51,470 nucleotides of DNA from NCBI RefSeq assembly GCF_001194135.2, contig NC_068984.1, forward strand, positions 72,333,305 to 72,384,774, written 5' to 3'. Shown piece after piece: positions 12,851 to 49,792 of this stretch. Each line of letters starts with the position of its first letter. Position 1 is the stretch's first letter. The DNA comes from Octopus bimaculoides. Its lineage: Eukaryota. The position numbers were made by a program, and so were the translations under genes. The notes beneath the pieces are model-generated. The model searched no databases, was not told the origin of the DNA, and saw nothing but the letters and a program-made list of their open reading frames with translations.

Positions 12851-13916
12851 CACGCACGCACGCACACACACACACACACATATATATATATANNNNNNNN
12901 NNNNNNNNNNNNNNNNNNNNNNNNNNNNNNNNNNNNNNNNNNNNNNNNNNNNNNNNNNNNNNNNNNNNNNNNNNNNNNNNNNNNNNNNNNNNNNNNNNNN
13001 NNNNNNNNNNNNNNNNNNNNNNNNNNNNNNNNNNNNNNNNNNNNNNNNNNNNNNNNNNNNNNNNNNNNNNNNNNNNNNNNNNNNNNNNNNNNNNNNNNNN
13101 NNNNNNNNNNNNNNNNNNNNNNNNNNNNNNNNNNNNNNNNNNNNNNNNNNNNNNNNNNNATATATATATGCATGTATCCATACATATCTATATATATAGA
13201 CATACATAAATATGTAATATCTATTCACATGTATCTAAATATAAATATATATATATATATTATATAATATTATGTTACATTATGTTATAGTATATAATAC
13301 TGCATTATATTATACTATATTATATTATATAAACAGGAAACCAGTTTTAAGTATAAAATGGTGATAGATATAACTCGACTACAGATTTATGTATTTATTT
13401 ACTTCATTGTTTCCTGCGACGTTAAATGAAAATGCATAAAAAGACGATATCAAGGAGGCACAAGGGAAATGTAAAAAAAACAAGAAGGTAATGATAATAT
13501 TAAAGCGAAGCGATTCTAAATGCATGCATTGCATTGAAGGTGTATATGCACATAGATATATATAAATATATACATACACATATATACCTACATACACATG
13601 CACACACATGCACACATACAAACTCACGCACATAAAAACACACATACAAACACACACACAAACACACACACACACACACACAAATATATATTTAGATATA
13701 GATATAAATATATAGATATATAAATATTTGTGTTTCATTAGGTGGAAAATGGTTTTCGAAGCAAAATATTATGGAGACGTATTACGTATGTATTTACACA
13801 CAAATGCACCCACAGGCGTGTACACACACGTGCTCACGCACACATTCACACACAAATACTCTCGTAGATACACACGCACATATTGACACACATGTGTGTC
13901 TGTTTGCGCATACATG

Positions 13917-13989
<73 letters not shown>

Positions 13990-14496
13990 NNNNNNNNNNN
14001 NNNNNNNNNNNNNNNNNNNNNNNNNNNNNNNNNNNNNNNNNNNNNNNNNNNNNNNNNNNNNNNNNNNNNNNNNNNNNNNNNNNNNNNNNNNNNNNNNNNN
14101 NNNNNNNNNNNNNNNNNNNNNNNNNNNNNNNNNNNNNNNNNNNNNNNNNNNNNNNNNNNNNNNNNNNNNNNNNNNNNNNNNNNNNNNNNNNNNNNNNNNN
14201 NNNNNNNNNNNNNNNNNNNNNNNNNNNNNNNNNNNNNNNNNNNNNNNNNNNNNNNNNNNNNNNNNNNNNNNNNNNNNNNNNNNNNNNNNNNNNNNNNNNN
14301 NNNNNNNNNNNNNNNNNNNNNNNNNNNNNNNNNNNNNNNNNNNNNNNNNNNNNNNNNNNNNNNNNNNNNNNNNNNNNNNNNNNNNNNNNNNNNNNNNNNN
14401 NNNNNNNNNNNNNNNNNNNNNNNNNNNNNNNNNNNNNNNNNNNNNNNNNNNNNNNNNNNNNNNNNNNNNNNNNNNNNNNNNNNNNNNNNNNNNATA

Positions 14497-18021: not shown

Positions 18022-18200
18022 GCAAAATAAGGAGACATTATACAAAACAATATAACATATCACACAGTCGTTAATGAATTCCATACCAAAACAATACTAC
18101 TGTAAAAAGGAAAAATATATATTACAGAAAAATAGCAATAAGCAGGATAATGTAAAAGAAATTAAAGAACACTACCAAGATATTGTGAAGAAGCCGTGAA
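18022..18200 (+). repeat. Left arm of diverged ~180-bp inverted repeat (partner 19188-19368)
   Basis: tattacagaaaaatagcaa, aaattaaagaacac and aatataacatatcaca match the reverse complement of 19188-19368. Confidence 0.8.
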
Positions 18201-18649
18201 CTTAAAATGTGTTGACGGCTTTATTTTGGATGTGTAATTGTCTTCATGCTTAAGAATTCTTCAAATGCATATACTAAAGGGAAATATTGCTTTTAGCTTT
18301 TATATGAAAGATAACATTTTTTCTAGAAAAATATATATTGTTGATAACTGTTTATTTACTTTAGTGGTATATTATCAAATGATGTGCTGAATCGAAGGTT
18401 CCACCTTATTTGGTTGCACTTCAAAGTATTATCTCGGGATTTATCGACGCTATCCACTTCTGTGTATACTTGCATACTTTCGTTTTGTCATCGGATGAGG
18501 CTTTTCTGGGTGTTTATACATTCACTTGTCATTATGCAACGTTTCTCATTGAAAGAAATTCAAATTCAGTCATGCATGTTAATGTATTCCACGGTGTTCT
18601 GAAAGAAAGCATGTGGTAAATTGTTTCTTCTGAACTCCAAATATTCTAA

Positions 18650-19370
18650 AGAGACTTAATAGGATTTGGTCCTCACTTTATGATTATAGACGCTTTACAG
18701 CAATGATGTCCAATCATTTGGAAAATATATCTTTATTGTTCCCCGGATACATTATTGCCGTAATAATTTTGAAAGTTGTGGGGTAACACACTATCGTTTT
18801 CTCGTTCATATGGGCGTGTATTCCTTCATTCGTGCTTACCTAATTGCTTACCTTCCGTCAGCCAGAGAAGCGTTGTATCCTGTTCATTCATCATTTGTTA
18901 AATATCATTTGAAATGGTTAAGAGTGTTTCTAAATATTTTTATCGGAAATTTGAGATGCTAAAACCACCTGTAAGTTCCTTCTGGTGAGTTTTGGTGTTG
19001 CCTTGTGTTGATGTCATCTGAAGACTCTATAGATATTCTGCTGGTAATCTTAATAATTTTTTTTCCGTTGTGATTGAATCACGTCTCCCCTATACTCTTC
19101 AAACTTCCTGTTCTTGGTACTGAATAATAATATATCTTTTGGCTTGAGTGAAAGATTCGTTTTCTACAAAATATCTTTGATATATTTTGTTTACAGCTTC
19201 TTTACAATTTCTCGCAGGTGTTCTTTAATTTCCTTTTACCTTTTTCCTCTTTGTTGCTATTTTTCTGTAATATCCTCTTCCTTTTTGCAGTAGTAATGTT
19301 TTGCTATGGACTTCACTAATAATCATGTGATATGTTATATTATTTTGTATAATTTCACTTTATTTTGTTT
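18650..19370 (-). pseudogene. Highly decayed non-LTR retrotransposon RT fragment, R4/Dong-like
   Basis: Minus-strand peptides LWLTEG, IVCYPTTFKIITAI and EQ occur in the order expected for WLTEG...RPITCLPTxYKxLT...EQKG. Many stops. Confidence 0.45.
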
Positions 19371-21749: not shown

Positions 21750-22162
21750 NNNNNNNNNNNNNNNNNNNNNNNNNNNNNNNNNNNNNNNNNNNNNNNNNNN
21801 NNNNNNNNNNNNNNNNNNNNNNNNNNNNNNNNNNNNNNNNNNNNNNNNNNNNNNNNNNNNNNNNNNNNNNNNNNNNNNNNNNNNNNNNNNNNNNNNNNNN
21901 NNNNNNNNNNNNNNNNNNNNNNNNNNNNNNNNNNNNNNNNNNNNNNNNNNNNNNNNNNNNNNNNNNNNNNNNNNNNNNNNNNNNNNNNNNNNNNNNNNNN
22001 NNNNNNNNNNNNNNNNNNNNNNNNNNNNNNNNNNNNNNNNNNNNNNNNNNNNNNNNNNNNNNNNNNNNNNNNNNNNNNNNNNNNNNNNNNNNNNNNNNNN
22101 NNNNNNNNNNNNNNNNNNNNNNNNNNNNNNNNNNNNNNNNNNNNNNTATATATACATATATA

Positions 22163-24871: not shown

Positions 24872-24940
24872 CATACATACATACATACATGAATAGATAG
24901 ATAGATAGATAGATAGATAGAGAAACATATNNNNNNNNNN

Positions 24941-36428: not shown

Positions 36429-36486
<58 letters not shown>

Positions 36487-36920
36487 ATATATGTATGTAT
36501 GTATATATAGTACAGATAGGTTTAAAAGAGAAAAATAAACTATACGTGGTAGAAGTATGAGGAAAATAAGAAGAGAAAAGCGAAAATGCACATTGGGTAT
36601 AAAACAATAAAGGTAACGGTAAATATATACAATTAGATTAACTGCGGTACAATTAAGAGGAATAAATCTCATTATTTCGAATTGTTAAAGTGATTCAAAG
36701 TCATACTGGTTTCGTCAACTGCTGTTCACTGGCTTTGAATGCGCAACAATTACCAAACGGTGTCGGGTTTACTAGTACCTGAGTAAAAAGATGATATGCA
36801 AGTTATGTAAGGAGTACTGGGAGTGGTGCAATTAAGTTAGATGTAGTAATGTAATATGAATGGTGTATGGAATGTATGGGAATTAGTGGTATTAATGAGT
36901 TAGTAGTGTTGTATATAATG

Positions 36921-37457
36921 TTATGTGTTCATGTTGAGTTGTGGAGGATATTTATTAATGAAAGTTGCTTCTTTACTCATTCTTTGCTGAACTGAGCTGT
37001 TCTGTGAACATTGATATGAAAGGACAATTTGGAAGTTAGGATTAATGTGCCTAGCACACCTTTCTATGTGTTCACTGACCTGTAATTTTCTGTATTGTGG
37101 GTAGCGGATTTGCTCTTTGTGCTGAGTTGTTCTTCGACAGAGTGATATTCCTGTTTGGCCAATATAAGGATTGCCGTAACCTAAGTAGGTGACGGCATAG
37201 ATGAGGTTTTCCGTGGCACAGGTGAAATTTGATCTTATCTTAAAAATTTCGCCTTGTTTAAAGTTGAACTCTGTACCCTTCAAAAGATGGGGGCATATGC
37301 CACATTTAGGGCGACCACATCTTCTCATTTTTGGTTCTGTTGTCAATGGATATAGTCTTGCATTAGATAATATATTTTCAATGATTTCGGTTGCATTTTC
37401 TTCTATGCAAGCTTTACAAATATGTGAATGTTTGTGCATTTTAGGTAATCCGTAAAA
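36921..37457 (-). pseudogene. PLE GIY-YIG endonuclease domain fused to the RT motif FYGLPK
   Basis: The 172-aa ORF has the CxxC/H/H zinc motif and an LIY...YIG triad. FYGLPK (37440-37457) is in the same frame upstream. Confidence 0.85.
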
Positions 37458-37674
37458 AAATACTTCGTCTGTATTTAAAACTGGATAGTCAATTTCGTTT
37501 TCAGTGAGGCCCTTTGCATGTACTTGAAGAAAGGCGGATAAGTTTTTAACTGTCTTCTGTGGGTTTTATTTTACTATCTTCTCATAGTAAATATTGTTTC
37601 CCAAGAGAGATTATTAAATATTTATAGTACTCAGTGTCCATCACTAATATCGCACTTCCTTTATTGGCTTCTTT

Positions 37675-38348
37675 GGATCTTTTTTAAAACGGGGGCCACA
37701 TTTTTCATTAATGTTTTACGTAGTGTTTTTGGTACCGAAAGACTTTCAAACTTCGTATACTTATCTATTTTGTGTTATAGAACAGAAAAATATTTTTATA
37801 TTCGAATTTATTTCATGTAAAAAATTGTCTTATTTCGATAATTTCAACCAATCACTGACGTCCATTCAGCCGATATACATTAAGTGCCGACTACATAAAC
37901 AGACGATTCTTCGTTTTATTTGCTTTTTTCATTTTAAATTTGCTTTAACCCTAACCCTAACCCTAACTCTAACCCTAACCCTAACCCTAGGGTTAGGGTT
38001 AGAGTTANNNNNNNNNNNNNNNNNNNNNNNNNNNNNNNNNNNNNNNNNNNNNNNNNNNNNNNNNNNNNNNNNNNNNNNNNNNNNNNNNNNNNNNNNNNNN
38101 TTAGGGTTAATTGTTTCAGAATCGTTTGTTTATGTAGTCGGCGCTTAATGTATATCGGCTGAATGGACGTCAGTGATTGGTTGAAATTACAGAAATACGA
38201 CCACTTTAACATGGAATAATTTATGGATTTCTTTTTTTTTTAAGAAGACTAAGAGAAAAAGATGTTTTATATGACACATTCTACCAGTGTTCCAAGTTTC
38301 AAAGTGTTTCGTTAATGAAAAATGTGGCCCCCGTTTTAAAAAAGATCC
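37675..38348. mobile_element. Non-autonomous palindromic DNA transposon (MITE), Merlin-like, carrying telomeric repeats
   Basis: Perfect 37-bp TIRs GGATCTTTTTTAAAACGGGGGCCACATTTTTCATTAA at 37675-37711 and 38312-38348. The 8-bp flanks GCTTCTTT/GCTTATTT match 7 of 8, like a TSD. An inner 72-bp inverted repeat is also present. Confidence 0.85.
37946..38109. repeat. (CCCTAA)n-(TTAGGG)n palindromic telomeric tract inside the MITE
   Basis: C-rich repeats switch to G-rich repeats at CCCTAGGG (37985-37992). There is a 93-N gap. Confidence 0.9.
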
Positions 38349-39040
38349 GCTTATTTAATGGTGAAGTTTATATCATTTTTAACTCGATTAGGTTTTTCCA
38401 TTCATTTGTGTTTAGGCTGGATTTTAATTCGTTGTTTTTGCAGGGTATTGAAAGGAAAGTTGGTTATGTTTTCACAAAAATCATCAAGTCCTTTATTTCT
38501 GCCTTTTGTAGGAGAATGTTCGCTTTTGTTTTAACTATTGAGTCATCTTCGCTAGTGTAGTTGTGAAGTGCTTCTGTGCGGCGTAATTTTCGGCCAAAAT
38601 CCATAGTGTCATCTTTGATTTTATTCGGGTTCGATCTCCAAGGGGTTGGTGTAAACTTTAAACCGCTTGCTAGAATTTTAGTTTCTGCAGTACTTAGGAT
38701 TTTCCTTCATAAGTTGATTATTTTCGGTTGTCCTGGTATTACATCTACCCTAATTACACCACTCCCAGAACTACTTACCTCCCTTAAATCTAATCTTCTT
38801 ACTCAGGAACTAGTAGACCCGACACAGTTTGGTAATCGTTGCGCATTCAAGGCCAGTGAACAGCAATTGACGAAACAGGTATGACTTTGAATCCAATTAA
38901 CAATTCAAAATAATTACTTTTATTCCTCTTAATTCTACTTCAGTTCATCTAATTGTGTATATTTATCGTTACTTTTTATTAAAAAGCCTTTATTTTTATA
39001 TATCCAATGTGCATTTTTGCTTTTTTCTTCGTACTTTCCC

Positions 39041-39085
<45 letters not shown>

Positions 39086-39444
39086 TAGGTCTCATGCTAC
39101 TGCTATCTAGCACCTTCGGATGATCTCTACTCAACTGCTACACGACGGCTACTCAACTCCTCTACCATGGCTTTATTCATATGTCTTGGGCGATCCTATT
39201 TCTTCGCTTGGGGTCGTCGACACAATATATATATATATATATCAATTAGAAAATGGAGGATAATATGTTGAACCCAACTACTTGCAGACAGTGTATCCCG
39301 TTGAATTCATTAATTTAATTCATAGCTAAAGTGACAAAAAAAACACAAAGTACAGGTGTTTATGACAAACCATGTTATTTTGTCATCCGGGTTTACAGAT
39401 AGAAGTACAAAGTACATAAGGAATTAGAGAATGAACAGAAGTTT

Positions 39445-39573
39445 AATCTTACAGCTGTTTCGGCTTAGGTTTGGCATGCCCCATTCTATCCGAATAGTTC
39501 TTGCCGGAGTGATTATCGGATGAAATTTTGAAATGGGGTTGCATGCACGAACCGCTAGGCCTCTTCAGAGATT
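39445..39573 (-). ncRNA. Type I hammerhead ribozyme with extended stem II
   Basis: AATCT-CTGAAGA-GGC...GCC-GAAA-C(AGCT)G-TA-AGATT. Stem I is a perfect 5 bp, all core nucleotides are present, and predicted cleavage follows GUA at 39450. Confidence 0.7.
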
Positions 39574-40291
39574 CACAAAGGGTTTCATACAAATATAGAG
39601 TAAGAGATAAAAACAGAGGTAGAATAGAGACAAGAACAAAAACAATAGCAAAAATAAGATAAAAATAAAAATAGAAAATAAAATAAAAATAAAAATAAAA
39701 ATAAGGGTACAGCAGGAAAAGAATAATAATAAAAAAATAATGCATAAATGAAAAATGAAAATATAACATAAGGGAAATATAAAAATATATTTTTAAAAAA
39801 CTAAAAATATAAGGCACATAAAGATCCTACAAACATTACAAATAGCTATAGACACTCCAATGCATATATATGTGTGGGTTCATGTGCATAATCATACTCA
39901 GATATTCCCTTACTCACATGTATACATATACAAGTATTTATACACAGGCATTCTACTACATACGCGGTTTGTTGGCATCAGTGCTATCTGCCGTACTTAG
40001 AAAGTTGTAAGTGTTTTTTTTTTAAAAAGTAGTAGTAATTAACCCTCCCCATTAGCAGCTGAATGTTCGAACCGTTGGAAGAAGCAACAGGATATCGTAC
40101 ACCGCAAAGTTTGAAAGTTTGGCATATTATTATTGTTGTTGTTGTTGTCATCATCATCGTCATCATCACTGTTATTGCTACTAGAACATTAATAACTCGT
40201 GTAAAATGAACTTCCACATAAACCCTTCCAAAATATATAGAAATGACACACACACACTCAGCAAAACTTCTTTTAGAAAAAACCCTTTGTG

Positions 40292-40420
40292 AATCTCTGA
40301 AGAGGCCTAGCGGTTCGTGCATGTAGCCCCATTTCAACATTTCATCTGATAATCACTCCGGCAAGAACTATTCGGATAGAATGGGGCATGCCAAAGCTAG
40401 GGCTAAACAGCTGTAAGATT
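40292..40420 (+). ncRNA. Mirror copy of the hammerhead with GAAA changed to TAAA (predicted inactive)
   Basis: Same layout as 39445-39573, but 40401-40420 reads GGC-TAAA-CAGCTGTA-AGATT. Confidence 0.55.
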
Positions 40421-40785
40421 AAACTTCTGTTCATTCTCTAATTCCTCATGTACTTTGTACTTCTATCTGTAAACCCGGTTGGCAAAATAACATGGTTTGT
40501 CATAAACACCTGTACTTTGTGGGGAGCGGGGTTGTCACTTTAGCTATGAATTAGATTAATGAATTCAACGGGATACACTGTCTGCAAGTAGTTGGGTTCA
40601 ATATATTATCCTCCATTTTCTAATTGATATACAAATTTGGGGTAATCCCCACCCCTTTTACTCGGTCCCATTTGTTGCACTTGGTATAACACTAGTATAG
40701 CAATAATTGGGTACCCTCCCAACAGTATATTGGATAGATATTATCCCTTAGTGGGTTGAATCCTCAACCCCTAACTCTCTCGCAT

Positions 40786-41025: not shown

Positions 41026-43278
41026 TGTATATATACATTACTTAATTGCAAGGTTAAAACAAAAATATTTTCTAATAAATAGAACGGTGATTTTAACTCA
41101 CAGCATTCAATTATTAAGCATTCATAATTGGAATGAATAAATAAAATTGAATATGAAGTATTTATGGAATTCTGATTTATTGTCGGATGATTTTCGGCCA
41201 ACCCTGTATATATACATGCCTACATATGGATATACAAATATACATACATATATACATATATATATATATTTGAATATAATTACAGACACCAGTTATTTTC
41301 TGTCACTAAGTTTTGTGAGTTTGAAATTATTTTCTGTCGATTTTACCTGTCACTCAAGCATGTATTATGAAACTTTATATTGGTAGTTGAATAGTTTTGC
41401 ACCATTCCAAAGCCAAATATTTAGATTATGGCTATATAACGATTTCGAATGCTTCAAACGTCTTGTGAAAATAAATGCCTAAGAAAATAATTCCACATTT
41501 GTAAGTTTCATTGATTATTATGTTTAGAATACATTGACAATACTTTCCAAATCATTAATGTAAACGGTTATAGCATTGCAAACTTCAACACGAAATTGAG
41601 TTTTCAGATATAAATCTTTTAAAATGTCAATGTAATATTGAATTGTAGTTAGTTTAACAAATGTTTTGTTGGCTTTTACAATTTCTTTTACAATCATTTC
41701 TTCTTTTAGTTCCTGTATTCATTCATTTTTATAATTTGAAGTGTGTTTGTCTTGTGGCAAAATTCTTAAATGTCTTTGCGAAACATTTTGACTTGTATCT
41801 CCAAAATTAGATTAGGGAAGCTTGGTTAAAGAGATTAATTTTTATGAAATAAAATATAAACTATACACGTTTTATTAGAAACACAATTAATACAAATGTT
41901 TGTCAAGTGAGTATGAAACCATAGAAAAATACTGACAGTAAAACTGTTTAAATACTACATAAAGTATGGTCTGTGTGTTTTGGTGCTTGATTTAATTTAG
42001 ATTTTGATTGACTAGTATAAAAATACATTTTCTTCTCTTAAGTTGACAACAGTTAAAACAGGGTAAGCTGACTACGTATTTTCTTTTCCCTATTTCTTTT
42101 CCCTAATATTTTCTATTCCCTATATATGAGGCAGTTTTATAATAAAACACATAACTCACAAGTCTAAATGCAGATGCATATGAAAATAATACATAAAATT
42201 GTATAGGTTATTTAGTTACTGAGTCCTCATTGAGTAGAACCACGAACAAAATGTTCACGTTGTTCTTGATCCCTTCATCGTGTATTGAATTTGTTTGTAA
42301 ATGCAACTTTATATTTGTACACTGCTTTTGTCCTTATTCAAAGGGTAGGATGTTATTTGGAAAATATTTGAGAGTATTTTCATATTGAAATTATCACTGC
42401 CTTTTTCTTCATCTTTATTACAATTTTAACTTTCCTTACGACAACTGTTGGTTTTAAGCAGTGAAAGGAAGGATAAATTTTGAGATGAAATAGAATGAGA
42501 TACTGAGAGGGTAAGCTTCAAAGGAAAAGACTTAAATGGTAAAGAGACACATGGCGGTGTCTACTATATACGATTAAGAGAAACAGTGGGGTATATGTCG
42601 GTATTTACATTGCGGGAAATGACGAAACAGAAGATACTGCCACGAGAATTTAGTAGGAACAGAAATTTATGGAATAAGCAAAAGAAATAACAAGAGTAAA
42701 TTTTTGCTATTAAGAAAAATAGGTGATAATGAAAGGATATGCTGTTGCACACAAACCAATATTCAAGCTGTTGCATATACTCAAAATAAAGAAAGTAAAA
42801 TGTAAAATAACCAAGAAGCAAGAGATGAGACACAGTTAGGGATCACAGTTAGGAGACACACAATTAGGGATCCTTAAGTTGATCTAAACCGGAAATTAAA
42901 AAAATGCGATCTCAATATATTTTCAAGCACTACGGATTGAAGAACAAACAATGTAATGTGCCTTTTATATAAGCAGGTAGTGTCTGTTTTTTGAAGAAAT
43001 TTGTTTTTAGCGTTTGTAACATTGTGTGTGTCAATGGTATATGCTTCATTGTTGAATAATTGTCAATAATAGGGTGCTGTTACGAAATTGCGTATCTAAT
43101 AAACACATAAAAGCTTATCAAATGAGATTGAAACAGAAAGTGGGGGTTTATCGGTGGCAGTATTAGGCGGAGCACTGAAAATTTTCATTAAGAATTTTGA
43201 TTGAAAATTTCATCAATCATTTTCATCAAGAATTTTATCAAAAGTTTTCTTCAAAAATTTTCATAAAAAATTTCATCA

Positions 43279-44964
43279 TTAGGGTTAGGTTAGGGTTAGG
43301 GTTAGCGTTAGGGTTAGGGTAAGGGCTATGGCTAGGATTAGGGCTAGGGTTAGGGTTAGGTTTAGGGTTAGGGTTAGGGATAGGGATAAGTTTAGGGTTA
43401 GGGTTAGGGTTAGCGTTAGCGTTAGGGTTAGGGTTAGCGTTACGGTTAGGGTTAGCTTTAGGGTTCGGGTTAGGGTTAGATTTAGGGTTAGGTTTAGGGT
43501 TACGGTTAGGGTAAGGTTTAGGGTTAGGATTAGGGCTAGGGCTACGGCTACGGCTATGGTTAGGGTTAGGGTTAGGGTTAGGATAAGTGTTAGGGATAGG
43601 GTTAGTTTTAGTAATAACGTTAGGGTTTGTGTTTGGGGTTAGGGTTAGGGTAAGGGTTAGGTTTGGGGCTAGGGTTTGGGTTGGGGTTGGTGTTGGGGTT
43701 GGGGTTAGGGTTAGGGTTATGGCTAGGGTTAGGCTTAGGCTTAGGTTTAGGGTTAGGGTTAGGGTAAGCGTTCGGGTTAGTATTAGGGATAGGGTTACGT
43801 TTAGGGTTAGTGTAAGGGCTAGGGTTAGGGTTAGGGCTAAGGTAATGTTTAGATTTAGGGTTAATGTGAGGGATAGGGTTAAGGTTAGGAATAGGGTTAG
43901 GATTACGTTTAGGGATGGGCTAGTGTTAGGTTTAGGTTTAACACTAACCCTAACCCTAACCCTAACCCTAACCCTAACCTTAACCTTAAACCTAAACCTA
44001 AAACTAAACCTAAGCCTAACCCTAGACCTAACCTTAACCCCAATACTAACACTAAGCCTGAACCTAGCCCTAGCCCTAGCCTTAAAACTAAACCCAACCA
44101 TTAAACCTAACCCTAATCTTAACCTTAACCCTAACCCTAACCCTATCCCTAACACTAAACCTAACCCTAACCCTAACACTAACCCTAACCCTAAACCTAA
44201 CACTGACCCTAACCATAAGCATGACCCTAACGCTGAATCTGACTCTAACCCTGACCTGGACCCTAAACCTGACCCTGATCATAACCCTGAACCTACCTTT
44301 CACACTGACCATAACCCTAACATTAAATCTAACCTTAACTCTAACACTAACCCTAACCCTAACCCTAAACCTAACCCTAACCCTAACACTAACCCTAACC
44401 CTAACCCTAACCCGAACACTAAACCTAAACCTAACCCTAAACCAAATTCTAACCCTAACCCGAAACCTAAACCTAACCCTAACCCTAACCCTAACCCTAT
44501 CCCTAAGCCTAACGCTAAATCTAACCCTAAATCTAACCCTAACACTAACACTAACCCTAACCCTAACGCTAAAGCTAGCCCTAACCCTAACCCTAACCCA
44601 AACCCCAAACCTAAACCTAACCCTAACCCAAAACCAAACCCAAACCCTAAACCTAAACCTAACCCTAACTCTAACGCTAAAGCTAAAACTAACCCTAACC
44701 CTAACCCAAACCCTAACCCTAACCCTAAACCTAACGCTAAAGCCTACACTAACCCTAACCCTAACTCAACCCTATCACTAACCCTAACCCTAACCCTAAC
44801 CCTAACCCTAACGCTAACCCTAACCCTAACGCTAACCCTAAACCTAACCCTAACCCTAACCCTAACCCTAAACCTAACCCTAACACCAACCCTTACCCTA
44901 ACCCTAACCCTAACCTTAACCCTAACCCTAAACCTAACCCTAACCCTAACCCTAACCCTAAACC
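43279..44964. repeat. Interstitial telomeric sequence, head-to-head degenerate (TTAGGG)n then (CCCTAA)n
   Basis: G-rich arm 43279-43939 and C-rich arm 43940-44964, with many variant hexamers. Confidence 0.95.
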
Positions 44965-46099
44965 TTTTTTTTTTTTAGGCAGAATGGTATGCATATAAGA
45001 TTGCAGGTCCTTGTGAGTAAGTTCTAATAGCGTCTAAAACTGGTCATTCCCAGTATAGAGTTTGTACACGGTGTTACTGAATCGAGCGTTTTATATAAAG
45101 TAACTTAAACGTTTGGAACGTATTTGTAAGGTCAAATCTAAGCAGTTAGAAAGAAACAAAGAAAATATAAAGAAAAATAGGAAAAAGAAAAAAGAAAAAA
45201 GAAAAAAGGAAAAATAAAAGTAATGAAGAGATGTAAAGTGTAGTGGTTAGTGGTCAGCCAAGATAAATTGACAGAAGGAATGGGGATGTGAGGGTGATAA
45301 AGAGGGAAAGAAATATGCGTATAAAGAGAGAGAGAGAAAGAAATATGCGTATAAAAAGATGATAGTAAAGGAGTATCAGATAGAAGGAATGGGAGGGGGT
45401 GATGGGTGATAGAGAGAGAAAGTTCTGAGAATGTAAAGAGTAAAGGTGTGTCCGGTATGTAGTGATAGAGCCTAAGTTAGGGGCAGAGGTAGGGGGTAGG
45501 GGGAGTAAAATGGTGGAATGAAGAATTTGGGAATATAGGTCAGGTTCGTTAGAGGACAGGTCAGTGCTTAGTAGTAGAAGAATGTATCATTATGTGAAGA
45601 TGTACACATGCATATAGTAAACATTTATATATATCAACACCTACATATACAACACGTACTCTTATGTATATGTTCGTACGTACATACGGACACGCGTATC
45701 TGTATGTATTATCGCCCTTGTAAACGCAGGTATATATACGTGTGTGTGTGTGTGTGTGTGCGTGTGTGTATGTGAGCGTGTGTGTGCGTGTGTGTGTGTA
45801 TGCAAGGAATATATACCTGCGTATACATGGGCGATAATATGAAAAGCAACAGGAACTAAAGCATCCCAGTTGAGGAATATTCACCGAGAATCGAACCCCA
45901 AAAAAAAAACTATTCATTCTTTATTATCCTTACTGCCAGGGTTAATTGCACTGTCTTATACCAGCAATATTTTGAAGCTTATTTAGACGCACTCAAACTA
46001 AACAACCTCACCGAGTCAAACTCACCTGCTGCACCTGTATTTCAAGCATTTCACTGAAATGCAGCAATTCTTACTTCACTCTTATTTTGTATATCGAAC

Positions 46100-47205: not shown

Positions 47206-47540
47206 NNNNNNNNNNNNNNNNNNNNNNNNNNNNNNNNNNNNNNNNNNNNNNNNNNNNNNNNNNNNNNNNNNNNNNNNNNNNNNNNNNNNNNNNNNNNNNN
47301 NNNNNNNNNNNNNNNNNNNNNNNNNNNNNNNNNNNNNNNNNNNNNNNNNNNNNNNNNNNNNNNNNNNNNNNNNNNNNNNNNNNNNNNNNNNGATGAGGAT
47401 GATGGTGACGATGATGGTGACGATGATGTTGATGGTGATAACGATGATGTTGATGGTGATAACGATGATGTTGATGGCGACGACTACTTTGATTATAATG
47501 AAGAGGATGATGACGACTATGATATTGATGATGATCAGTG
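47065..47540. repeat. (AAT)n and (GAT)n-like trinucleotide tracts separated by an N gap
   Basis: Visible runs. Confidence 0.95.
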
Positions 47541-47799
47541 AATATACATAGTAAATTAACCTCTTGACATAAAATCTTAAATGATACAATAGCGACAAGT
47601 TGGCTGGGATATGCGCCGACAGAGCAGGAAAAGCTAATTGCACATTCGCTGCTGTATACTGCCAGCATTCCAACATTCTGATGATCAATCTAATTACCTT
47701 GATAGCCGTTATTGCGTATAGACTTACACACACACAAATAAAGAAAAAATTAAAATATTAACCCTTGCTTTTCTTGCATATTTCGAAACAGATTGATCT

Positions 47800-48045
47800 C
47801 TAAAGTAAGGCCATTATTTATTTTTATGTGGAGGGTAAAAGTTATTGACATTGACTCCAGGATTTATTCTTATTATTTAGCCTATCAGATATCCTATAAC
47901 GACCACGTTTCCAATGATACATTGTACCAAATGGCTGACGAAAAGCAAATGAGCACAAGGATAAAGGAATGCCGGCTGAGATGGATTGGTCACGAACTGC
48001 GACAATCCAAAGTTTCTCGCTGGCCTCAAACGCTCGATTGAATCC
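47800..48045 (+). pseudogene. RTE-like LINE ORF2 C-terminal fragment
   Basis: QISYNDHVSNDTLY...STRIKECRLRWIGHELR matches the RTE-type I-W-D-(V/I)SN...RLRW-GH-R motif. Confidence 0.6.
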
Positions 48046-48099
48046 AATCCATCCACATTCATGTAGATGGGTTGCAAAGAAACACAATGTGTCCCTTTT

Positions 48100-49792
48100 A
48101 CAAATGTGTCCATTTTTGCATGTGTGTCCTCTCTTGCTCAGAAACGCAATGTGTCCCTTTCCACGGTGTCCAAAGTTGTGAACAGGAATCTTGGCATGAC
48201 TAGTTATGTTCGACGACGCCGTCACCTCTTGACAGCCAAAGCAATCAGAGCCAAGAGTTTGTTATTCATCAAGCAAGGTGCAGGAAAAACTCACGTGTTT
48301 GTGGACGAGAAGTTCAGAGTGGACGCTGAGGTGAAATGCAGTAATTCTCGAGTGATTGCATACAACCCTTCTGACGTCCCCCCTGTGTTTGAGACTAAGA
48401 ATCTCGCATCTGTGATGGTAGTTGGTGCCGTGGCGAGTGATGTAATTTTTCATGAATCCACACTTCATTGAGTCTGGCTTGAAGATCGGCACAAAGGTAC
48501 GTCAGAACTTCATGAATAACTCTCTGTTACTTCGGATGAAGCAAATGATTGGGCTTAAAAATGTGGTGCTTAAGGCGGCGAGGTGGTGAAGTTAAAGTGA
48601 CTGTACAAGAAGTTTTGGGTTGTTTCTCACTGGTCACAATTATAGCAGCTTCTTCAACGCACCGTTTCAGTTCGTAATTTTCATCTGTGACAGTAGCCAA
48701 CTGTTTTGGGAGACTATCAGCAACTCTTTCTAATAAAGTGCGTGTTGGTTTCTTAGAGCAAAGTACTACGAGATGCACGTTAAGGTCTCCATGCAACAAT
48801 AATCCTTTTGGCTAATACCCCCAACTCGCATCACACCCTTCAAAGCTCGTGAACCATCATCTGTTTTTGTCCCTATTTTTTGCTGCTCCCTCTTTCTTCA
48901 CTTCTTTAGCTAAGGCGATGAGCTGGCAGAAACGTTAACACGCCGGGCGAAATGCTTCGCAGTATTTCATCTGCCGTTACGTTCTGAGTTCAAATTCCGC
49001 CGAGGTCGACTTTGCCTTTCATCCTTTCGGGGTCAATAAATTAAGTACTAGTTACGCACTGGGGTCGATGTAAACGACTTAATCCCTTTGTCTGTCCTTG
49101 TTTGTCCCCTCTATGTTTAGCCCCTTGTGGGCAATAAAGAAATAAGAAACGTTAGCAGGTCGGGCGAAATGCTTAATAGTATTTCGTCTGTCTTTATGCT
49201 CTGAGTTCAAATTCCGCCGAAATTGACTTTGCCTCTCATCCTTTCGAGGTCGATAAATTAAGTACCAGTTGCATATTCGGGTCGATCTAATCGACTGCCC
49301 CCCCCCCCAAAAAAAAATTTCGGGCCTTGTACCTACAGTAGAAAAGAATGTGGTGCTTATCCAGGATTCTGCACCATGCTATAGGTAAAAAGCAATACTG
49401 GTTTTCCTTGGTGAGAAGGTGCCAATTTTTGTGAGGGCTAAAATATACCCCAGTAACAACCCAGATCTCAACCTTGTCGATTACTTTTTTACGGGGCATA
49501 CTTCAAGCTAGGATCAATGCTTCACCATACTCCATTGTCAAGAGTTTGAAGACCTGCATCAAGCATTCGACACGCAAAATCAAAAAGGCAGAGGTAGCTG
49601 CAGCTGCAAAAAAGTTTCATTCTTGTATAGAGGCAGCAATTTCTGGAAAGGGCGGCCATATTGAGTGATAAATGCTTTTGTTAAAATAAATATTACATTA
49701 AAGTTATCTCTGTCTACCACCATTATTTTAGTATTTATAACCAGTTTTATGCATTGTAAAGAAGTGTCTCAATTTATCTGCAAGATCCTATA
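48100..49792 (+). mobile_element. Tc1/mariner DD37D (maT-like) transposase pseudogene, split by insertions
   Basis: HTH region LAQKRNVSLSTVSKVV...HLLT, FVDEK (first D) and KNLASVMVVGAVASD. After the inserts come QDSAP and PDLNLVD, with 37 codons (one a stop) between the last two Asp. Confidence 0.8.
48913..49340 (+). mobile_element. Tandem SINE pair (two related monomers)
   Basis: The head gagctggcagaaacgttaacacgccgggcgaaatgc and B-box GAGTTCAAATTCC occur in monomer 1 (48913-49147). The sequence from gaaacgttagc onward repeats in monomer 2 (from about 49146). Confidence 0.88.

Follow-up and report, generated by a model that had tools for sequence, protein, structure and literature searches.

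A degenerate head-to-head telomeric array inside an octopus scaffold as a probable scar of an old telomere-to-telomere junction

The window, that is, the whole 51,470-nt stretch of Octopus bimaculoides DNA that was analysed, contains a genuine head-to-head interstitial telomeric sequence (ITS), whose status as a fusion site is unproven. We give a probability of roughly 60% to the reading that this array is the scar of an old telomere-to-telomere junction of the head-to-head type. The orientation of the arms, their independence and equal age, the pattern of decay from once-perfect repeats and the unrelated flanks speak for this reading. TTAGGG is, besides, the only telomere motif of cephalopods that has been determined by experiment (PMC13218726). 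The array would go back to two perfect (TTAGGG)n tracts, one of at least about 110 units and the other of at least about 171. With its 5' side, each tract would have bordered a unique sequence of its own, and their distal ends would have been joined end to end in one event. After joining, about 14% of independent point substitutions would have accumulated in place, together with few frame-breaking indels and minor local duplication. Telomerase would have made the tracts, which were presumably joined as capped ends. Counting against this explanation are a reversed purity gradient, an unusual substitution spectrum, and flanks that do not resemble subtelomeres. In its present state, the array is most likely inert, and any remaining role would be limited to that of a potential hairpin, G-quadruplex or site for shelterin binding.

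The G-strands of the two arms converge on the junction, the left on the + strand and the right on the - strand (Table 1). Tandem Repeats Finder (TRF) returned 43279-43940 as TTAGGG x110.5 (76% matches, 0% indels, score 636) and 43939-44965 as TAACCC x171.2 (79% matches, 0% indels, score 1084), in agreement with the coordinates and the arm lengths of about 660 and 1020 bp given in an initial annotation of this DNA. The abrupt change of strand that it had placed at 43939/43940 is borne out by a strict partition of the units: there are 41 perfect TTAGGG and 0 CCCTAA units in the left arm, and 70 perfect CCCTAA and 0 TTAGGG units in the right. Likewise, a search of the whole window for the 18-mer (TTAGGG)3, allowing up to 2 mismatches, gave 140 matches compared to 0 in 100 shuffles. 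Within the array, all + strand matches fell in 43290-43842 and all - strand matches in 43942-44961, and the only matches elsewhere were seven at the core of an upstream foldback (37943-38004). All the variant units that had been named earlier, TTAGCG, TTACGG, CTAGGG and TTTAGG (equivalent to TTAGGT), were found in the array. The long open reading frames (ORFs) that run through it are not coding but a by-product of the stop-free frames of TTAGGG and CCCTAA. In particular, one ORF of 463 aa spans the junction; used as a protein query, it gave low-complexity matches only, and we consider it spurious.

Table 1. Positions of the array, its boundaries and other features of the window
Feature	Position	Strand	Evidence or details
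N runs (eight, 10 to 504 nt)	1630-1639, 2317-2701, 12893-13159, 13990-14493, 21750-22146, 24931-24940, 38008-38100, 47206-47391
Penelope-like retroelement	36561-39039	-	ORF relatives, tblastn, pseudo-LTR
Foldback inside the Penelope-like element, ~670 bp	37675-38348		Arms 37675-37945 and 38109-38348
Left boundary, AT-rich minisatellite (AAAATTTTCATCA; further periods of 25 and 38 nt)	43178-43278	+	TRF, sequence
Left arm, ~110 degenerate TTAGGG units	43279-43939	+	TRF, wraparound alignment, unit counts
Switch point, short imperfect hairpin	43921-43946	.	Sequence, DNA fold
Right arm, ~171 degenerate TTAGGG units (CCCTAA on + strand)	43940-44964	-	TRF, wraparound alignment
Right boundary, a sharp transition at T12 (A12 on the G-strand side)	44965-44976	+	Sequence
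ZFR-like DZF_N fragment	48527-48799 (DZF_N segment); 48584-48910 (pseudogene fragment)	-	Pfam E=4e-9 (48527-48799)

The switch reads TAGGTTTAGGTTT/AACACTAACCC, with TT/AA at its centre, and the two blocks abut with no spacer, in the orientation of fusion-type ITSs. The hairpin at the switch consists of TAGTGTTA, 10 nt, and TAACACTA, and a perfect 36-nt run of CCCTAA follows directly after the switch (43945-43980). When the 201-nt centre (43840-44040) was folded as DNA, we obtained -42.1 kcal/mol (z=-5.4). Read 5' to 3', both unique flanks lead into G-strand repeats that face the junction. Thus, the fusion-type geometry likened earlier to human 2q13 holds, as does the remark that these repeats are oriented opposite to the foldback core 5 kb upstream.

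The eight N runs mark the window as a gapped draft scaffold, and most of them lie in or beside microsatellites. An assembly artefact, in which two telomere-like contig ends were misjoined or a tract was built from erroneous reads, would be in keeping with such gaps, and the perfect run at 43945-43980 offers a single point at which a mis-join by a small-k graph is conceivable. Nevertheless, we regard an artefact as highly improbable. As had been noticed before, no N lies inside the array, the nearest gaps being 38008-38100 and 47206-47391. No 45-mer occurs twice within the array and perfect telomeric runs in it do not exceed 36 nt, which puts its assembly within reach of ordinary reads. Moreover, the switch is located left of the perfect run, where the sequence is unique and heavily altered by variants, which means that reads must contain the inversion. 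A total of seven indels that are not multiples of six in 1686 nt rules out raw long-read filler, and the arms are not mirror copies, so a missed-adapter palindrome does not apply. Judging from the alignment, about 4 changes per 31-mer should not be obtainable from short-read error k-mers. Consequently, the scaffolding artefact listed among the initial alternatives is disfavoured by the absence of N, the absence of repeated 45-mers and the near-absence of indels.

Decay of the units was followed by wraparound alignment of each arm to a cyclic perfect TTAGGG. Per-base identity to the perfect repeat was 85.6% in the left arm, with 95 substitutions and 3 non-hexamer indels, and 86.9% in the right arm, with 134 substitutions and 4 non-hexamer indels. 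The resulting divergences of 14.4% and 13.1% are not different (Fisher p=0.47). Mismatches per hexamer were distributed as 40/43/21/3 in the left arm (41.4/42.6/18.3/4.7 expected; binomial p=0.58) and as 70/70/23/5 in the right arm (72.9/65.3/24.4/5.4 expected; binomial p=0.75). Such binomial counts are expected from independent, in-place decay of repeats that were once perfect. There are 34 distinct variant unit types in the left arm and 36 in the right, about half of which are singletons. Some variants are clustered, with runs of TTGGGG and CTACGG in the left arm and a block rich in TCAGGG, a unit that is also clustered, in the right arm at ~44200-44330. For identical variant units of the left arm, clustering was significant between neighbours (p=0.009) and also over distances of up to three units (p=0.002); for those of the right arm it was seen between neighbours (p=0.02), with p=0.13 over up to three units. 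This slight clustering argues for some local slippage after mutation, though only a minor amount. No significant self-offset that would indicate a higher-order repeat was seen inside the arms.

The two arms are independent tracts of equal age and not copies of one another. Alignment of one arm against the other revealed no shared order of variants at any unit offset in either direction. At most 4 to 6 identical variant units were common to the two arms, which is within the permutation range, and in the palindromic register only 0 to 3 were common to both. Base complementarity between the arms was 71-78% at every in-phase register, approximately the product of two independent purities of ~86%. 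We therefore reject a local foldback of an already degenerate array, an alternative proposed at the outset for which this alignment had been the suggested check: the variants of the two arms do not follow a common order, and neither flank is an inverted copy of the other. A recent palindrome or hairpin-primed copy carrying a flank is excluded by the unlike arms and the unrelated flanks. Palindromic duplication in general, whether hairpin-primed or by sister-chromatid fusion, calls for arms that mirror each other and flanks that are inverted, and neither was observed. Duplication of a tract that was still perfect would be compatible with the arms alone, but mirrored flanks would be needed.

At both boundaries unique DNA changes sharply into near-perfect repeats. 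On the left, the minisatellite adjoins the first TTAGGG, and on the right, T12 separates the last repeat from unique sequence. We found no target-site duplication between the left and right boundaries, and no boundary microhomology or other duplication was seen. The flanks show no similarity to one another in either orientation except for low-complexity matches, and they have nothing in common with the rest of the window. They contain ordinary microsatellites, transposon fragments and a pseudogene, and no subtelomere-like features were found in them within the window. An exact scan of metagenome contigs with the left junction gave no match. About 400 bp to the left of the array, at 42831-42872, there is a 13-nt tandem repeat (CACAGTTAGGGAT x3) with single TTAGGG motifs, whose presence is probably a coincidence.

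Purity varies along both arms. At a natural chromosome end, variant-rich repeats are expected by the subtelomere and pure repeats distally, and a fusion-type array is expected, although not by definition, to be purer toward the former tips. The opposite was observed in both arms, which are purest beside the flanks and most degenerate near the junction. In the left arm, mismatches per base rose from 12.0% in the outer half to 17.0% in the inner half (Spearman p=0.011), and in the right arm from 9.6% to 16.5% (Spearman p=0.0002). The exception is the right arm directly at the junction, where six units are perfect.

The spectrum of substitutions is also unusual. Transitions make up 34% of the changes in the array compared to 58% in six in-window repeat pairs (p=1.4e-5), which included the direct pair 48928-49079/49145-49296 and the inverted pair 18023-18208/19184-19367. 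G>T accounts for 39% of all changes in the array, mostly at the 3'-most G of GGG. From this transversion-rich spectrum, it follows that the tracts may not have decayed by an ordinary neutral process, or may have started out imperfect. Oxidative damage to G runs, and added mutagenesis in the middle of an inverted repeat prone to hairpin formation, can be offered as guesses. Neither the reversed gradient nor the transversion excess is well explained by any model of origin that we considered. Both can be measured, and they show how telomere DNA ages once it is internal.

The sharp boundaries and the content of the flanks bear on a purely local origin. At a local break, both 3' ends could have been extended by telomerase, or opposed telomeric fragments could have been captured, and the ends then rejoined, so that the flanks would always have been neighbours. 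Capture of a terminal fragment in inverted orientation was considered as well. The sharp transitions from unique to near-perfect sequence on both sides resemble those at telomerase-mediated insertions, the flanks resemble ordinary interspersed DNA, and the other telomere-like repeats in the window sit in non-terminal contexts. There is also a precedent at a horse locus, where a complex break-repair event with rearrangement made head-to-head telomeric stretches (PMC7215372). The array shares its sharp unique/telomeric boundaries and its ordinary interspersed surroundings with the short break-repair ITSs described by Nergadze and co-workers (PMC7215372). Those insertions, however, are usually near-perfect, and their units, which number from a few to some hundreds, all point the same way (PMC7215372), whereas the array differs in size and orientation, having ~282 units in two opposed blocks that have diverged by 13-14%. 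The insertions described so far are short and of one orientation; 282 units in two orientations would need two long extensions plus a rejoining. The boundaries lack the microhomology or duplication of such repair, and the inward rise in degeneracy is likewise left unexplained. Taking these points together, we consider a local break possible but unlikely.

The fusion sequence at human 2q13-2q14.1, reportedly described by IJdo in 1991 and by Fan in 2002, is in our comparison the closest known object to the array. Both are chromosome-internal, and in both (TTAGGG)n changes abruptly and head-to-head into (CCCTAA)n, with no spacer and with degenerate arms that are hundreds of bp long (PMC6410037, PMC7215372, PMC6800518). 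In contrast to the array, 2q13 is flanked by recognisable subtelomeric duplications, and its origin by fusion is proven by synteny among the great apes (PMC6410037, PMC7215372, PMC6800518). It has been described as the sole fusion site in human (PMC7215372). Head-to-head orientation was found in 0 of 1229 interstitial sites in C. elegans (PMC6800518). Other arrays share some features. The tandem-fusion sites of muntjac retain telomeric blocks of 168-837 bp at proven ancestral fusion points, but these blocks are all in one orientation and abut centromeric satellite I, with no head-to-head case among them (PMC2760882). In Caenorhabditis, degenerate ITSs of up to ~1.2 kb contain both degenerate and perfect units, lie on chromosome arms, and have been read as decayed tracts that were once perfect (PMC6800518).

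One specific form of the telomere-to-telomere junction is a karyotype-level fusion, in which the array would mark the place where the telomeres of two ancestral chromosomes fused and each flank would once have been a subtelomere. It accords with the head-to-head geometry and the two independent, equally old arms, and with hundreds of units per arm, as break-repair insertions typically have tens. Elsewhere, few interstitial arrays are head-to-head (PMC6800518, PMC7215372). In addition, the ~30 chromosomes of octopods are derived from about 46 (PMC13218726). On the other hand, unlike the prediction for a former chromosome end of the 2q13 type, purity in the arms is highest where the subtelomere boundary should be and lowest at what would have been the distal ends. 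The flanks have no common repeats and are ordinary microsatellite, transposon and pseudogene DNA, and the ancient octopod fusions have been described as followed by mixing (PMC13218726), which would not be expected to preserve a clean junction. On balance, we think that this sub-case is unlikely. That the array is a preserved fusion junction in a cephalopod lineage, either from an octopod karyotype-reducing fusion or from a younger lineage-specific one, strikes us as quite unlikely. Of the fusion interpretation in the initial annotation, the geometry stands; the step from geometry to chromosome fusion finds no support in the window, and both the reversed gradient and the absence of subtelomere-like flanks weigh against it.

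A decision between these origins would matter, because head-to-head telomeric arrays, rare as they are, are the only sequence-level mark able to pinpoint an end-to-end fusion. If synteny showed different ancestral chromosomes on the two sides, the array would date and place a fusion in a group where the evolution of karyotypes is being actively studied. It would then be an invertebrate counterpart of human 2q13, and its inward-rising decay and G>T-rich spectrum would record how a buried pair of telomeres mutates. If the flanks instead proved to be collinear in relatives, it would follow that long head-to-head arrays can form locally and that geometry is not proof of fusion.

The gradient is also relevant to an origin from a transposon, in which terminal inverted repeats of telomere-like hexamers would belong either to one foldback (FB-like) element or to two paired elements. 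With their unequal lengths and their highest purity on the outside, the arms of the array would resemble FB-type inverted repeats, and another foldback in the window has a telomere-like centre, (TAACCC)7-(GGGTTA)n. However, an FB-like element or MITE should belong to a multi-copy family and be bounded by a target-site duplication, and no such duplication was found; nor was there a second copy in the window or any inverted similarity beyond the hexamer arrays. The array is oriented opposite to the core of the upstream foldback and has no sequence in common with that element, and its mismatches per unit fit perfect repeats that decayed at random better than they fit a repeat with internal structure. 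We therefore judge a transposon-borne origin very unlikely.

The upstream foldback lies inside a Penelope-like element. ORF 37439-36921 on the - strand had 1163 relatives by HMMER, the long ones of which carry RVT_1 together with a GIY-YIG domain at the C terminus, identifying the element as a canonical endonuclease-bearing Penelope-like element. The ORF itself is a decayed C-terminal GIY-YIG endonuclease domain; it found no match in a word-index search, in contrast to the full HMMER search. By tblastn, residues ~2-122, 94-225 and 580-817 were placed on the minus strand between 38751 and 36918, with N-terminal residues mapping to 38751-38321 and 37674-37377. When 26 Penelope-like proteins were compared to the window by tblastn, matches were confined to 36918-38751. 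These placements belong to one copy, from which the reverse-transcriptase core has been deleted. An inverted pseudo-LTR is present (36606-36848 versus 38980-38737, 85%), and (TG)n lies on both sides of the element, at 36444-36484 and 39047-39085, which suggests that it inserted into a microsatellite. This would fit the bias toward insertion into microsatellites that has been reported for Penelope-like elements (PMC8557442).

Within the ~270-bp arms of the foldback, two blocks are conserved, one of 105 nt (90%) and the other of 37 nt (100%). At the centre lies a telomere-like palindrome in tail-to-tail arrangement, (TAACCC)7-(GGGTTA)n-N93-TTAGGGTTA, which is interrupted by a gap of 93 N. The foldback may be a foldback MITE that inserted there, or else a palindrome by which the retroelement primes itself. 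The repeats that had been called a MITE core are thus confirmed in their orientation, opposite to that of the array, and are now located in a foldback inside the Penelope-like element. A link of the array to either the element or the foldback was rejected, as neither shares sequence with the array or its flanks. An exact scan of metagenome contigs with the foldback arm gave no match.

To the right of the array, the ZFR-like DZF_N fragment continues without interruption across the site of a 1.28-kb GT..AG intron in a relative (L002), and it contains two frameshifts inside the conserved MRVGVLAKGLLLHG motif. Coding sequence for DZF_C is absent anywhere in the window. On these sequence features, we read the fragment as a processed pseudogene, and a test of gene collinearity across the array by way of the ZFR-like gene is for that reason void. 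Across the protein searches with sequences of the window, the best relatives are distant fragments. No known RNA families, including hammerhead motifs, were detected in the window at gathering thresholds.

Several other repeats and fragments were observed. A LINE-like C-terminal fragment with the motif ...RLRWIGHELR... was identified by eye at ~47754-48038, and a Tc1/mariner-like transposase fragment at 48067-48471 was recognised by eye and by a weak Pfam match to HTH_Tnp_Tc3_2 (E=0.11). The two copies of the direct repeat at 48928-49079 and 49145-49296 have 83.6% identity, and those of the inverted repeat at 18023-18208 and 19184-19367 have 80.9%. Finally, an inverted pair of 352 nt with 93.5% identity (39238-39585 and 40280-40631), whose copies are ~700 bp apart, looks like a separate and younger foldback or MITE-like element.
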